64,000 bases of DNA from positions 1 to 64,000 of the IMG/VR virus record IMGVR_UViG_3300021963_000023; one strand, written 5' to 3'. Position 1 is the first letter of the stretch; each line of letters begins with the position of its first letter. The notes beneath the pieces were generated by a model, which did no database searches, had not been told where the DNA came from, and was given only the letters and a program-made list of their open reading frames with translations. The translations under genes were made by a program, and so were the position numbers. Shown in pieces: positions 39,720 through 53,099 of the stretch.

Positions 39720-40116
39720 TGGTGGAGGTGACGGGACTCGAACCCGTGTCTTTCCTGTTCAACAATAAATGACTACACGTTTATTCAATTGGTTCTCAAC
39801 TGACAAATAGTAAATTAATTACAGGAAATTTACAATACTGTTTTTGACTGGATTTTCAAGAGCCGTCAAATTTGCTCCAACACTCTTCGGGTGGTATTAC
39901 ACCTTAAAGGCTTCTGTTCCTAGGTTATATGCCAGTCGACCCGATTGTAGTTTCGCCTTAGGCTACTGCTACGTTAGAAGTTGCAAGCAAGCCTGCTACT
40001 TCCATGTTGTTATAAACGTTGCCGTCTAAAATTTTCCACCATGTATTAAAGTCATAGATGAAGTCTGACTACGTGCCATTTACCCCTGATACCTGAAATC
40101 AATGCCAGGCACCCCC
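39720..40116 (-). ncRNA. ssrA: tmRNA, tag (A)GNVYNNMEVAGLLATSNVAVA*
   Basis: 5' GGGGGUG pairs with 3' CACCUCC-ACCA with G3.U70; GGUUCGAGUCC T-arm; UAGAC before the resume codon; tag ORF 40023-39958; 397 nt. Confidence 0.93.
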
Positions 40117-43926: not shown

Positions 43927-44728
43927 AGGCTGAGATTACACCATTTAACGATTGACTTTGAGACATTATTTTTTTCTTCTCTTATCCACTACCTTTTGAG
44001 TAGTACCAATCAGCGACGGTCAATTAGATTAACCAATCCTTAAGTCGTTAGATACTCTTTTAATACTTATTACTCTTCGAGGTTGCCACCCCAATTAGTC
44101 CTTGCGGGACTAGAGAACTTTCTCAAAAATCATGTTGGGCTTGGGACCCCTTCATGGCCGAGAACCTCTCTCGACTGTGTAGTCACCTGTCTCCAACGAC
44201 TGACGAGCACTTTTCCTTTATTGTTTGTAGTTGTTAAACCAAAATTAACAAAGTTTGTTGGTTCCGAATGTGGAAAGTAGCGGCTCGTCTGCCAGCCAAG
44301 CCACCTTTTGAGCGACTCGATACTAAACTACTCTCTGAGATATCCCTATCTCCATATTTTTGGACTCCTTCGAAATTAAACTCTTGGTAGAATTTAACTA
44401 AGGATGACAACAGCACCACCTGTTTTTCACCATACCTTTCGGTTTTAAGACGCCCCTAATATTGAATCACACAATTATAAGATTGGAAATCCTACTTCTC
44501 GTAATAACTCTACAGATTATTCTTATTGGTGTTCCCACCTCAATCAAACAACTCGGATTGCTTGATCATCGAACCACTTTCCCTACAGTGTTACCCTCAG
44601 TACTTAAGGTTCAACGATATTCTGCTTGCCTACTCAAGATCCATTACTGAATCCGCAAAACACTTAACCAAATGCTTCACTTTATCCCACTTTCATGGTT
44701 TATTTTAATCGACCATAGGCGGCCAATA
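43927..44728 (-). ncRNA. large (~800 nt) structured ncRNA, GOLLD-like
   Basis: no credible ORF; GC-richer than flanks; many hairpins (ACC-GAAA-GGT, TAGTCC-CGCAA-GGACTA, CTAC-TCAAAAG-GTAG); own promoter and terminator; next to a phage tRNA array; size fits GOLLD; ends approximate. Confidence 0.65.
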
Positions 44729-46379: not shown

Positions 46380-46384
46380 GTTTG

Positions 46385-46458
46385 TGGACCAGCCTGGGCT
46401 CGAACCAGGGACCTATTCATTATGAGTGAAGTGCTCTAACCAACTGAGCTACAAGTCC
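46385..46458 (-). tRNA. tRNA-CAT (Ile2 or Met)
   Basis: cloverleaf, CTCATAA loop, Ile-like body. Confidence 0.85.
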
Positions 46459-47770: not shown

Positions 47771-47786
47771 ATTTGTTTTTCCAATA

Positions 47787-47833
47787 TGTCAAAGAACTTT
47801 ATCAAATATAAGAATAATAAATTATAAAACAAA
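47787..47833 (-). promoter_or_regulatory. Bacteroidetes promoter + boxA
   Basis: TTTG-N19-TATATTTG (47803-47833), then AGTTCTTTGACA (47787-47798). Confidence 0.72.
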
Positions 47834-47863
47834 AAACCCGAACATTTTTAGTTGTTCGGGTTT
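47826..47863 (-). terminator. terminator of putative attenuator 2
   Basis: AAACCCGAACA/TGTTCGGGTTT plus T-tract. Confidence 0.75.
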
Positions 47864-47884
47864 CGATATTAGTTAAAAAAAGTA

Positions 47885-47992
47885 TTATCCTTTATTGATA
47901 TCCGAACATATGTAGCATAATGGTTGCACACCATACCCATTACCATTGTTAAGGGGTCTCGTACTTGTCAATATGTTATTTATATTCTTCAT
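47885..47992 (-). CDS. 35-aa putative leader peptide MKNINNILTSTRPLNNGNGYGVQPLCYICSDINKG
   Basis: read by eye; lies between a TATCTTTG promoter (48011-48018) and a terminator. Confidence 0.55.
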   Translation of the reverse strand: MKNINNILTSTRPLNNGNGYGVQPLCYICSDINKG

Positions 47993-48041
47993 CGTTTTAA
48001 TAAGTATACGCAAAGATAAGAAAAAACTGAATACTAAAAAA

Positions 48042-49222: not shown

Positions 49223-49224
49223 GT

Positions 49225-49492
49225 GTTTGATCCTAACTCAGCTTAAGTTGCTCCATCCAAGTCTTGCTCTGGTTAACAAAGTCCTCGATGAGTTAGTTTC
49301 AAATAAAATAACAAGTTTTTCGTACGCTTTTGTACATCATAACCGATTATTTCTAACCGGTGGTTACATTTTCGTCAATTGGTTAATTACTCCCGACTTA
49401 TTGTAACTCTACCCACACCGCTTTAATACCGCGAATCAAGACGGCTTTTCGGGATTTATATACCGTGGGCTTCCACCACAGTCGTCACCTGT
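49225..49492 (-). ncRNA. candidate ~265-nt ncRNA
   Basis: no credible ORF; own TTTG-N19-TATATTTG promoter (49497-49527); local hairpins. Confidence 0.45.
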
Positions 49493-49535
49493 TATACAAA
49501 TATAAATTAAATTTTTTAAAATTCAAAATATATTT

Positions 49536-49608
49536 TGGTTGCGGAGCCAAGAATCGAACTTGGATGCACAGGCTTATGATACCTGGCGGGTTACCTAACC
49601 TCTCCGCA
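49536..49608 (-). tRNA. tRNA-Met(CAT) with reduced D-arm
   Basis: UGCGGAG/CUCCGCA acceptor, CAT loop, TTCGA, encoded CCA. Confidence 0.75.
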
Positions 49609-49897: not shown

Positions 49898-50101
49898 TTA
49901 CTTCCATTGAGTTTTTCGGTTATACTTCCAACCTCTATACTCTCTTCTTTTATGGGATTCAATCGGTTTCCCGTTACCGTGTCTTCCATGAACAAAAGTT
50001 GGGGAACAGTCATAATACCAACTTCCGTTTCTTTTCTGACATATGAAACAATAGTTGTGTGATTGTTTCTTTGCTTTTACTTTGTACTCTTTGTTTGTCA
50101 T
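49898..50101 (-). CDS. small basic Cys/His protein
   Basis: CFIC...C...H; co-oriented with the tRNAs. Confidence 0.55.
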   Translation of the reverse strand: MTNKEYKVKAKKQSHNYCFICQKRNGSWYYDCSPTFVHGRHGNGKPIESHKRREYRGWKYNRKTQWK

Positions 50102-50180
50102 ATTGCATTAGTTTAACTAATGCTGGTCATATTTCTTTTTCATACTTTACAAATTGTAAGTGTTTTACTTTACATATTAT

Positions 50181-50254
50181 TGGCACGGGTGGAGAGATTC
50201 GAACTCCCATCGACGGTTTTGGAGACCGGAATGCTACCATTGCACCACACCCGT
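50181..50254 (-). tRNA. tRNA-Trp(CCA)
   Basis: cloverleaf, CCA. Confidence 0.9.
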
Positions 50255-50259
50255 GTATG

Positions 50260-50333
50260 TGATCCCTACAAGACTCGAACTTGTGACTCCCTCATTAAAA
50301 GTGAGGTGCTCTAGCCAACTGAGCTAAGAGATC
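50260..50333 (-). tRNA. tRNA-Lys(TTT)
   Basis: cloverleaf. Confidence 0.92.
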
Positions 50334-50338
50334 AATTG

Positions 50339-50411
50339 TGGAGAAAGTTGGTTACGCTCCAACTCCTAAGGATTTTCAGTCCTTCGCTTCTACTAAGTTA
50401 GCTTCATCTCC
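50339..50411 (-). tRNA. tRNA-Phe(GAA)
   Basis: cloverleaf; atypical T-loop AGCGTAA. Confidence 0.78.
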
Positions 50412-50416
50412 TTATG

Positions 50417-50489
50417 TTGGAATGATAAGACTCGAACCTATAACCTTCCGCGTATCAGGCGGATGCTCTCACCATTGAGCTACATTCCA
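50417..50489 (-). tRNA. tRNA-Ile(GAT)
   Basis: cloverleaf, loop CTGATAC. Confidence 0.85.
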
Positions 50490-50492
50490 ATT

Positions 50493-50565
50493 TGGTGGAC
50501 ACGTAGGGAATCGAACCCTTTCACTCTGATTGCAAATCAGGTGGTCTGCCATTGACATCCGGCCC
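50493..50565 (-). tRNA. tRNA-Ala(TGC)
   Basis: G3.U70, TGC loop, CCA; imperfect acceptor stem. Confidence 0.75.
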
Positions 50566-50613
50566 ATTATATTCTGCCAAAACTTGCTTTTTTTATAAGA
50601 TTTGGCACGGTAT

Positions 50614-50652
50614 AAAACAAAAAACCCTGAGATTTTGTAGTCTCAGGGTTTC
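50614..50652 (-). terminator. terminator of putative attenuator 1
   Basis: AAACCCTGAGA/TCTCAGGGTTT plus T-tract. Confidence 0.78.
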
Positions 50653-50674
50653 TAATATTTTAAGTTAAACTAAA

Positions 50675-50773
50675 TTAACCAACATCAGTATCTTCGAGAC
50701 TATCGGACATAGCACGCTCATCCGCCCATTTTGAGCAGATAATAAACGACATTGTATGTTTTTGTTGTCTCAT
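50675..50773 (-). CDS. 32-aa putative leader peptide MRQQKHTMSFIICSKWADERAMSDSLEDTDVG
   Basis: read by eye; lies between a TATCTTTG promoter (50802-50809) and a terminator. Confidence 0.55.
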   Translation of the reverse strand: MRQQKHTMSFIICSKWADERAMSDSLEDTDVG

Positions 50774-50911
50774 TGAATTTAGTTTTACCTTTTTTCTTTT
50801 ACAAAGATACTAATAAGTATTCGTAAAGTCAATAAAAACTCTAATTTTTATTTTTTTGAGTAAAAAACAAGTTAAGAGTTGCCGAGACTTGCCTTGTTGA
50901 TATTTATCAAT

Positions 50912-51454
50912 ATGGCAAAAAATAATAGACTAAACGTCTCTCTATTACCTTTATTGGTACTGTTTAGCTTCTATGGGTTATATTCTTATATAGTTAGCCC
51001 AATAGAAGAAACTAGATCTGTTTATATCTCAAAAGTTGAGAACAAAATTAAGATCGGTAAATTGGCAAACAATAGGAATTTAGCTTTTGGTTGTAAGAAT
51101 ATTTTTGAAGAAATCTTACAAGAAAAGGAATTTGTTATTGTTGATAACCCAAATTCTGCAGATTTGATATTCAATGCTGAGATTTTGTATTTTGACGTTA
51201 ATCGCACAAAAAGAAATATATCAGTATTTCATTCTGACATTGAGGAAACTCTGGTTGTTATGAAAGGAACACTTACAGATAAGAATGGTAAAAAAATAAA
51301 AGAAGCCGTTGCAGAGGAATCTAGTTCAGAAATATCAACATCGACTTTAATAACTGATGAGGGAAGTGATAAAATAAATCAACAAGCACTTTCGTCTGCA
51401 ATAAAAAAAACATCGGAATCACTAATAAATAAAATATTATTTAATAAAAAGTAA
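50912..51454 (+). CDS. membrane-anchored periplasmic protein, CsgG/LptE/TolB_N-like fold
   Basis: N-terminal TM; VYISKVENK...EEILQEK...ADLIFNAEIL...ALSSAIKK. Confidence 0.55.
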   Translation: MAKNNRLNVSLLPLLVLFSFYGLYSYIVSPIEETRSVYISKVENKIKIGKLANNRNLAFGCKNIFEEILQEKEFVIVDNPNSADLIFNAEILYFDVNRTKRNISVFHSDIEETLVVMKGTLTDKNGKKIKEAVAEESSSEISTSTLITDEGSDKINQQALSSAIKKTSESLINKILFNKK

Positions 51455-51455
51455 A

Positions 51456-53099
51456 ATGAAAAAAGCACTCTCTCTTTGTATTTTTTTATTAGTTGCCATG
51501 ACTTCTTTTGGTCAACTAACAATTAATCAAACAATAACACCAACAACAGGATTAAAAGTTGGTGACACATTAACAGTAAAATACACTGTTGTAAGGGGCA
51601 CCACAACCCCTCGTTATTTTTGGTTAAGATACTCATTTAATAATAAAGCATTAACAATGGTACCTAATAGTACTGTTTTTTCACAAGGTAATTCCGTACA
51701 GACATTTTATACTGGTTGGGATAACTATAAGTTTACACCAGCTGCAAATATTGCAGATACACAATTATATTTACAATATCAATCAACTCCTTGGGCATAC
51801 GCCGCTAACACAGATTGGAATGTTGGACAACTTACACTACAAAGAGCTGATGCATCAATTAATGGTGATATCGCAAGTCAAAAATATGTTTTAAAAGATC
51901 AAAACACATATAACAATATTCATAAACTTGATTTATCATATGCTATAAATGATTCGTCTACAAATATTTCTCCAATAACTAGAAATGCAACTAATATTTC
52001 ATTGTCCAATGTTCTTGGAAATACTTCACAGTTTAAGGTAAAAGTTTTGTTTCCACAAGGGTACACAATAACGGATCATAATATTCAGTTAATGAAATTA
52101 AAATCGGATGGTAGTGGTGATATAGATTGGTCACAACAACCCATTGCACAATTACCATTAGACGCTACTGGTGAAGCACTTTTCACAACACAAGTTAAAG
52201 TAGGTGATAGTATAGGATTATGGGTTAGTCCGGCGTCATCAAAAGCTTGGATGAATAACGTAATTACAGTTTCAGATGCATATAAAGCATTCTTAGGCCA
52301 TTCACAAACAGATATTAGTGGTACAGCCAACTTTTTTACATATCCAGTTTTAGAAAAGAAAATTGGTAATGTTACTAAAAACGATGCGATTTTTAACGAA
52401 AGTGACTCATATAATTTATTTGCACATGTCATGGGACAAAACGTATCTGCCAATGCATTTATACCAACTCAAACAGCAACGTCTTGGAGATTTCATAGTG
52501 GGTTATTAAATCAAAGTTGGTTAGATGGTATTCCAAAGTATAAGGTAACTATTGATACACCAATTAAAGAGGTTTATGCAGTATTTGCGTGGGGTGGTGA
52601 TTTAGATTGGTCACATTCATCTGATCCTGCGGTAATTGCTAGTAGAATATCATCAGGACAATTCACAAACTCAATTAATAATACTAAATCAACAATGTCT
52701 ACACAATCAATGGCATATAAAACCGAGGCATTGGAAACAGCTAAATTAAGTGTTGTATCTACATTAGAAAATGGTAAAGTTGTGCTAACAACGAATCTAA
52801 CGAAAGAGGGGTTAGCCGGATTAGAAGTTATAATGAATTATGATAATTCAAAATTAACTTTAGATAATATCATATTTGATTCTGGATCAAACATCACCAA
52901 TTTTTCAACTAAAGAAGAAGGTAGATTAACATTTGGTTCTATTGATCAATTAAAAACAGCTAGAATAAAAGTTGGTACACCATATAAATTAATATTTACA
53001 CCAAAAGATACCTTAACAAATACCGCTGGGTTATTCTACTTTGTTTTGTCTGATGCTGTTGATGGTTTCGGTAACAAAATAAATTTAATTGTAGAATAA
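51456..53099 (+). CDS. secreted protein with cohesin-like ends and a dockerin-like segment
   Basis: signal peptide; VGDTLTVKY..F.LRYSFNNKAL; ITVSDAY...FNESDSY; GLAGLEVIMNYDNSKL. Confidence 0.6.
   Translation: MKKALSLCIFLLVAMTSFGQLTINQTITPTTGLKVGDTLTVKYTVVRGTTTPRYFWLRYSFNNKALTMVPNSTVFSQGNSVQTFYTGWDNYKFTPAANIADTQLYLQYQSTPWAYAANTDWNVGQLTLQRADASINGDIASQKYVLKDQNTYNNIHKLDLSYAINDSSTNISPITRNATNISLSNVLGNTSQFKVKVLFPQGYTITDHNIQLMKLKSDGSGDIDWSQQPIAQLPLDATGEALFTTQVKVGDSIGLWVSPASSKAWMNNVITVSDAYKAFLGHSQTDISGTANFFTYPVLEKKIGNVTKNDAIFNESDSYNLFAHVMGQNVSANAFIPTQTATSWRFHSGLLNQSWLDGIPKYKVTIDTPIKEVYAVFAWGGDLDWSHSSDPAVIASRISSGQFTNSINNTKSTMSTQSMAYKTEALETAKLSVVSTLENGKVVLTTNLTKEGLAGLEVIMNYDNSKLTLDNIIFDSGSNITNFSTKEEGRLTFGSIDQLKTARIKVGTPYKLIFTPKDTLTNTAGLFYFVLSDAVDGFGNKINLIVE

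Follow-up and report, generated by a model that had tools for sequence, protein, structure and literature searches.

How phages regulate their own tRNA genes is largely unknown, and tRNA operons in general are thought to be controlled at initiation. In a 64,000-nucleotide stretch of DNA from an uncultured phage of unknown host (positions 1 to 64,000 of IMG/VR record IMGVR_UViG_3300021963_000023, a contig of 251 kb; hereafter the window), a short ORF followed by a strong terminator stands at the head of an array of tRNA genes on the minus strand. We asked whether this is an attenuator in which translation of the ORF could decide whether the tRNA genes are transcribed, and if so, what it senses. 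A sequence-only reading had proposed that a segment of the ORF can pair with the terminator, that the array is transcribed when translation is impaired, and that the peptide, which uses 17 different amino acids, suits a general sensor. The elements it described are all present, and its central reading is supported. The sensor part needs refinement, since the codons of the leader are specifically those read by the tRNAs of the segment that it heads.

The leader and the first tRNA gene

The promoter-like site is of the Bacteroidota type and lies at 50832-50802. It consists of TTG (50832-50830), a 20 nt spacer and the box TATCTTTG (50809-50802). An A-rich 5' untranslated region (50796-50774), counted from the inferred transcription start at about 50796, leads to an ORF of 32 codons plus stop at 50773-50675 (MRQQKHTMSFIICSKWADERAMSDSLEDTDVG). 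The intrinsic terminator (50653-50620) has 13 pairs followed by T6GT4. Its 5' arm is at 50650-50641, its loop at 50640-50633 and its 3' arm at 50632-50623, and the whole element including the T tract extends to 50611. On the other strand, a gene cluster starts at 50879. The region is therefore a divergent intergenic region, and nothing upstream can feed transcription into the tRNA array.

The first gene after the terminator is a tRNA-Ala(UGC)-like gene at 50565-50496. It is atypical. ARAGORN misses it, and Rfam scores it 29.7 bits against a gathering score of 29, but it is conserved in most relatives. Twenty-one further tRNA genes follow, then a GOLLD RNA and a tmRNA. Between the terminator and tRNA-Ala, the window carries a palindromic 45-nt insert (50610-50566; GCCAAA...UUUGGCAgAAUAUAA) that contains a TATAAT and a 7/8 match, AAGTTTTG. 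A consensus scan calls no promoter in the insert, but one cannot be excluded. The insert is found in only 5 of 78 relatives.

In two freshwater metatranscriptomes, a contig with one mismatch begins at 50796/50795, 6-7 nt after the box, covers the leader to 50613, and runs on for 68-80 nt into sequence unlike the window. That is what a strain without the insert would give. There is no coverage at 50797-50984 in any of the four runs. The shared 5' end fits a transcription start, and the extension shows that RNA continues beyond the U tract, although no termination ratio can be read from assembled contigs.

Conservation and alternative pairing in relatives

The complementarity noted in the sequence-only reading is between TAGTCTC (50702-50696) in the ORF and GAGACTA (50644-50638) in the terminator 5' arm and loop. 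Taken alone, it is weak. The best duplex between the ORF and the 5' arm has an energy of -10.4 kcal/mol. An energy at least as good is reached with P = 0.25 in base shuffles and P = 0.14 in codon shuffles, and a perfect match of 7 or more with P = 0.03. It becomes convincing only through conservation and covariation in relatives.

Relatives were sought with the neighbouring proteins and then with an alignment of the peptide itself. This gave 38 viral and 80 metagenome loci containing 80 distinct versions of the module. A blastn search of 50000-52000 against 50,697 phage records found only tRNA-level hits, and a scan of 185,579 bacterial and archaeal species genomes for the peptide found nothing, so there is no prophage or host clue. 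In all 80 versions, the ORF, of 29-34 codons, starts with ATG, stays in frame and stops at nearly the same place, with indels in multiples of 3. The terminator is kept in 78 of 80. TAnnTTTG is present 27-31 nt before the ATG in 71 of 78, and 65 of these also have TTG 19-22 nt upstream of it (61 at 20 nt). In 65 of 78, the first tRNA starts at most 16 nt after the end of the hairpin, at the end of the U tract, which leaves no room for a promoter and agrees with the sequence-only reading, in which no further one was seen before the first tRNA. Codon-position entropy shows no strong third-position excess (0.23/0.29/0.33), so coding is inferred from frame conservation and from the tRNA match described below.

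In all 78 relatives with a terminator, the best duplex between the ORF and the 5' arm falls at the same site in the ORF, the anti-arm (in the window UAGUCUCG at 50702-50695, codons 24-27). The energies range from -9 to -19.5 kcal/mol, except in one locus (-6.6) where the terminator arm was mis-called. In the 54 window-type leaders (class I), the proposed helix is paired in 92.7% of cells, against 10-47% when the partner is slid by 1-3 columns. Its two variable core pairs switch between G-C and A-U in 18 and 23 sequences. The same two columns of the 5' arm covary with the 3' arm in the terminator, which is paired in 100% of cells. In a second group of 18 sequences with the peptide tail MSRGVL (class II), the ORF segment UCCCGAGGU is a perfect 9-base complement of the arm ACCUCGGGA; 95% of cells are paired, two other pairs show compensatory changes, and the terminator is again paired in 100% of cells. 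This covariation comes from few lineages. On a tree built from the flanking columns, the arm type changes about six times, but there are only three well-supported independent contrasts, two concordant and none discordant, which cannot reach significance. The amino acids at codons 24, 25 and 27 vary freely (D/I/N/K, S/C/G and E/D/G/S) and codon 26 (CTC, Leu) never changes, while the nucleotides keep pairing with the arm and the first loop bases.

Folding predicts a four-segment switch. For the full leader, RNAalifold on the 54 sequences gives the terminator (segments 3 and 4) plus a helix between segment 1, UGAGAC at 50772-50767 overlapping the start codon, and segment 2, the anti-arm (GUCUCR). 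The minimum-energy fold of the window agrees, with z = -5.7, and z-scores over the full-length leaders range from -3.5 to -7. Segment 1 is invariant, so the 1:2 helix of this module is predicted without support from covariation. The class II leader L113 and a leader from the Pro clade described below also show the terminating fold at full length. When the 3' arm is removed, the leaders of the window and of L113 fold instead into the 2:3 helix, and in the window a hairpin over the stop codon (50680-50663; GGUUAA...UUAACU) is nested inside it. By eye, variant sequences keep a hairpin there. A further hairpin inside the ORF (50740-50720; AUCUGCUC/GGGCGGAU), over the ICSKWAD codons, is present in both the full and truncated folds of the window, and the third codon positions there are invariant. 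It may be a pause site that synchronises ribosome and polymerase, but that is a guess.

A second module and the codon–tRNA match

The array contains a second module at 48018-47833, with another TATCTTTG box (48018-48011), a 35-codon ORF (47992-47885; MKNINNILTSTRPLNNGNGYGVQPLCYICSDINKG) and a terminator (47864-47833) with the same flanks. The peptide is unrelated to the first, but the architecture is the same. The full leader is predicted to pair GAAUAUA (segment 1, 47987-47981, codons 2-4) with UAUGUUC (anti-arm, 47908-47902) and to form the terminator, while the truncated leader pairs UGUUCGG with CCGAACA. In nine relatives, the 1:2 and 3:4 helices are 94% paired, with four compensatory pairs, and 2:3 is 100% paired. 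The two compensatory pairs in 1:2 come from one lineage only. In L219, one of these relatives, a single A/T flip runs through all three helices. Unlike module 1, terminator 2 is directly followed by a promoter-like site conserved in relatives, TTG-N19-TATATTTG (47832-47803), before tRNA-Leu. Next comes the motif GTTCTTTGACATATTGG (47797-47781), which we considered as a promoter, but its position varies (after a tRNA, or before an ORF), so its role is left open. Another promoter-like site lies inside the first half of the array at 49526-49497. The attenuators would therefore modulate expression rather than fully gate it, and module 1 does not govern all 22 tRNAs.

Module 2 splits the array into two segments. 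Segment 1 has tRNA-Ala and then, at 50489-48512, Ile, Phe, Lys, Trp, Arg(ACG), Cys, His, Asp, Ser(UGA) and Glu, plus a Met(CAU)-like tRNA at 49608-49539. Segment 2 (47832-45593) has Leu(UAA), Arg(UCU), Pro, Asn, Leu(UAG), Tyr, Met/Ile2(CAU), Thr, Gly, Gln and Ser(GCU). Each leader's codons match the tRNAs of its own segment. Codons 2-24 of leader 1 include a cognate codon for 11 of 11 tRNAs of its own segment and 4 of 11 of the other. Codons 2-28 of leader 2 include one for 10 of 11 of its own (11 counting the start codon) and 2 of 11 of the other. Random windows of the same length from the phage's own long ORFs cover 5.8 and 6.8 tRNAs on average, and none of 20,000 reaches the observed fraction and coverage together. 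A Fisher test on the codons gives P = 1.3e-5.

The match follows the gene content in other clades. Phages whose array begins Pro, Asn, Trp, Leu(UAG), Gln (the Pro clade) have the leader core TSNQLNWNEQP in place of FTICSKWA; their leaders cover 10/10 to 11/12 of their own tRNAs, while swapped leaders cover 42-62%. In class II, the Val and Thr tRNAs lie in segment 1. Leader 1 there has gained a Val codon, has three Thr codons, covers 14/14 tRNAs and has 95% of its sensor codons read by its own segment, and leader 2 lacks Thr and covers 12/12. In locus L253, which has a divergent leader, the two modules are in reverse order, and the Asp and Glu tRNAs lie with the other leader. That leader has D and E, and leader 1 has lost them. 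Over 36 leader/segment pairs, own-segment tRNAs are covered 405/444 and other-segment tRNAs 60/229. These pairs are related, so the count is descriptive, and most of the 39 misses come from loci where module 2 was not detected by our script. There are exceptions. The window keeps a Val codon in leader 2 without a Val tRNA, L041 keeps Asp codons without an Asp tRNA in segment 1, and L157 has an unchanged leader in front of a shortened array. A search for a third leader family in 222 loci, before L253 and the class II form of leader 2 were seen in a later set, found only artefacts.

Mode of action and alternatives

We consider it likely that these are two ribosome-mediated transcription attenuators, each at the head of one half of the array. 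That the ORFs are translated and that stalling gives read-through are inferred. In this model, an untranslated leader forms 1:2 and then 3:4, and transcription terminates. It also terminates when a ribosome runs quickly to the stop codon, because the ribosome then covers segment 2 (class II, where the stop is 2-6 nt after it) or abuts it (window class, 16-18 nt). A ribosome held up in codons about 4-20 leaves segment 2 free when segment 3 emerges, 2:3 forms, and RNA polymerase runs on into the tRNA genes. Since the sensor codons sample those read by the tRNAs of the segment that follows, a shortage of any one of those charged tRNAs would raise transcription of that operon and sufficiency would shut it down. 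This is negative feedback on tRNA supply that works as an OR gate. The host anticodon nucleases proposed as the trigger in the sequence-only reading are compatible with this design, but remain speculation.

The leader-peptide attenuators of the trp, his, leu, thr, ilv and pheA operons of Proteobacteria similarly have a short translated ORF (translation being inferred here), the choice between 1:2 plus 3:4 and 2:3 (1:2 being only predicted here), regulatory codons upstream of segment 2, a terminator directly before the regulated genes, and codons cognate to what the operon supplies. Here the regulated genes are tRNAs rather than enzymes, the leader has no run of one codon but one to three codons for each of about 11-14 different tRNAs, segment 1 overlaps the start codon, and the carrier is a phage with Bacteroidota-type promoters. 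In the pheST (pheM leader) and thrS-type systems, genes of the translation apparatus are likewise controlled by how well the leader is decoded, but one amino acid or tRNA is sensed and a protein gene controlled. A T-box riboswitch also feeds back on the supply of charged tRNA through read-through of a terminator, but it binds a single uncharged tRNA directly, without a ribosome. Neither leader region (50613-50811 or 47826-48032) matches an Rfam leader family or T-box at E <= 1. The tRNA clusters of large phages such as T4 and T5 are interspersed with small ORFs and non-coding RNAs and probably compensate for codon-usage differences or host tRNA depletion. We found no description of leader-peptide attenuation, or of any translation-coupled feedback, for a phage or cellular tRNA operon in a full-text literature search that did not cover subscription journals.

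More likely than not, each leader is an evolvable roll-call of the tRNAs behind it, rewritten whenever tRNA genes move between operons. It would let the phage detect a shortfall of any single decoding species, whether from a codon-usage mismatch, starvation or host anticodon nucleases, and answer by transcribing the matching tRNA set. It would then be the first attenuator known to control tRNA genes and the first multi-tRNA sensor. It would also give a testable link between phage tRNAs and host tRNA depletion or cleavage, assign a function to the many small ORFs inside phage tRNA clusters, and provide a compact natural design for codon- or tRNA-specific sensors.

The alternatives seem unlikely. 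The best of them is the reverse logic, in which efficient translation of the leader promotes read-through and tRNA transcription rises when decoding works. The sequence alone does not fix the sign of the switch. Because segment 1 overlaps the start codon, an initiating ribosome frees segment 2, and in the window class a terminating ribosome abuts segment 2 rather than covering it. However, a ribosome at the class II stop codon must cover it, the sensor codons all lie upstream of segment 2, as in the trp, his and pheA leaders, and a positive loop would give no reason to sample every tRNA of the segment.

It is about as improbable that these are ordinary small-protein genes with their own terminators, with a function such as anti-defence, and with the tRNAs made by leaky read-through and internal promoters. 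The peptide core THTMSFTICSKWA is highly conserved, the internal promoter-like sites exist, and the complementarity in the window alone is not significant. Against this, the amino acids over the anti-arm vary while the nucleotides keep pairing, there is three- and four-way covariation, and the match of leader codons to their own segment and mismatch to the other have no explanation under this view. Pfam and PHROGs gave no hits for either peptide, nor for a 67-aa ORF. An arrest-peptide sensor of the TnaC/SecM/Erm-leader type, stalling in response to a small molecule or ribosome state, is suggested by the strongly conserved core with its invariant Trp, but is less likely still, since the core is replaced wholesale exactly where the downstream tRNA set differs, and leader 2 is unrelated in sequence yet has the same architecture and codon–tRNA logic. 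Least likely is an untranslated RNA-only element, a riboswitch or an sRNA released by termination, for although the third positions of codons 10-18 are invariant and lie in a hairpin, the fold z-scores are strong and the leader RNA is present in RNA libraries, there is no Rfam match, the frame, start and stop are kept in 80 of 80 variants, and the codon–tRNA correspondence only makes sense if the codons are read.

Atypical tRNA genes and codon assignments

The first tRNA gene of the array (window 50496-50565, minus strand) is atypical. It has anticodon UGC and a G3:U70 pair, but it also has an extra bulged base in the 3' acceptor strand and weak D and anticodon stems. ARAGORN misses it, and Rfam gives it 29.7 bits. 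The same odd form is conserved in more than 40 relatives, always as the first gene after the terminator. A second marginal tRNA (49539-49608, minus strand; Rfam 28.9 bits) has anticodon CAU and a reduced D arm, and it falls at the position where relatives carry tRNA-Met(CAU).

Leader 2 (47885-47992, minus strand) has three AUA codons that no annotated tRNA reads. The "Met(CAU)" tRNA of segment 2 (46384-46458, minus strand) may be a lysidine-type tRNA-Ile2. Class II relatives carry tRNA-Ile(UAU) in that segment instead. In one relative (contig 3300046787_000508; L215 and L242), ARAGORN calls a tRNA with anticodon CUA, labelled Pyl, at the end of segment 1; this is an amber-suppressor-like tRNA.

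Other RNAs and a small ORF in and near the array

A GOLLD RNA (43927-44335, minus strand; Rfam RF02032, 314 bits) and a tmRNA (39720-40116, minus strand; tag GNVYNNMEVAGLLATSNVAVA) lie just downstream of the tRNA array on the same strand. The presence of a phage-encoded tmRNA next to stall-sensing leaders is suggestive.

Within the array, the interval at 49223-49526 (minus strand) begins with the promoter-like site TTG-N19-TATATTTG (49526-49497), which is followed by about 260 nt of noncoding, relatively G+C-rich sequence before tRNA-Asp. Word depth over this interval in RNA libraries is very high (94-510 in the metatranscriptome run X1), and there is an adapter junction at 49484 and a mismatch-free contig at 49148-49389. 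There is no Rfam match, and the fold z-score is -2.1. This is a candidate unknown RNA or a long pre-tRNA leader. A 67-aa ORF with CxxC...C...H spacing (49898-50101, minus strand) sits inside the array between tRNA-Trp and tRNA-Arg. It has no Pfam or PHROGs match. An RNA contig bridges it and tRNA-Trp.

Repeated motifs and rearrangement of the modules

The palindromic 45-nt insert (GCCAAA...TTTGGCAnAATATAA; 50566-50610, minus strand) lies between terminator 1 and the first tRNA. Related palindromes of 45-75 nt, in either orientation, occur only in the relatives L007/L033, L133, L134 and L149. It looks like a small mobile hairpin element. The motif GTTCTTTGACATATTGG (47781-47797, minus strand) lies about 10-15 nt before tRNA-Leu(UAA), and it is also found in the relatives L113, L119, L122, L127 and others. 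The same motif sits between the first and second tRNA in class II relatives and before a protein ORF in L122.

In the relative L253 (IMGVR_UViG_3300042691_039013), the two modules are in reverse order, with a divergent second leader (MRNLLNIQMIQETPNSVNGYDVPEVYTQVR) and a reshuffled tRNA content per segment.
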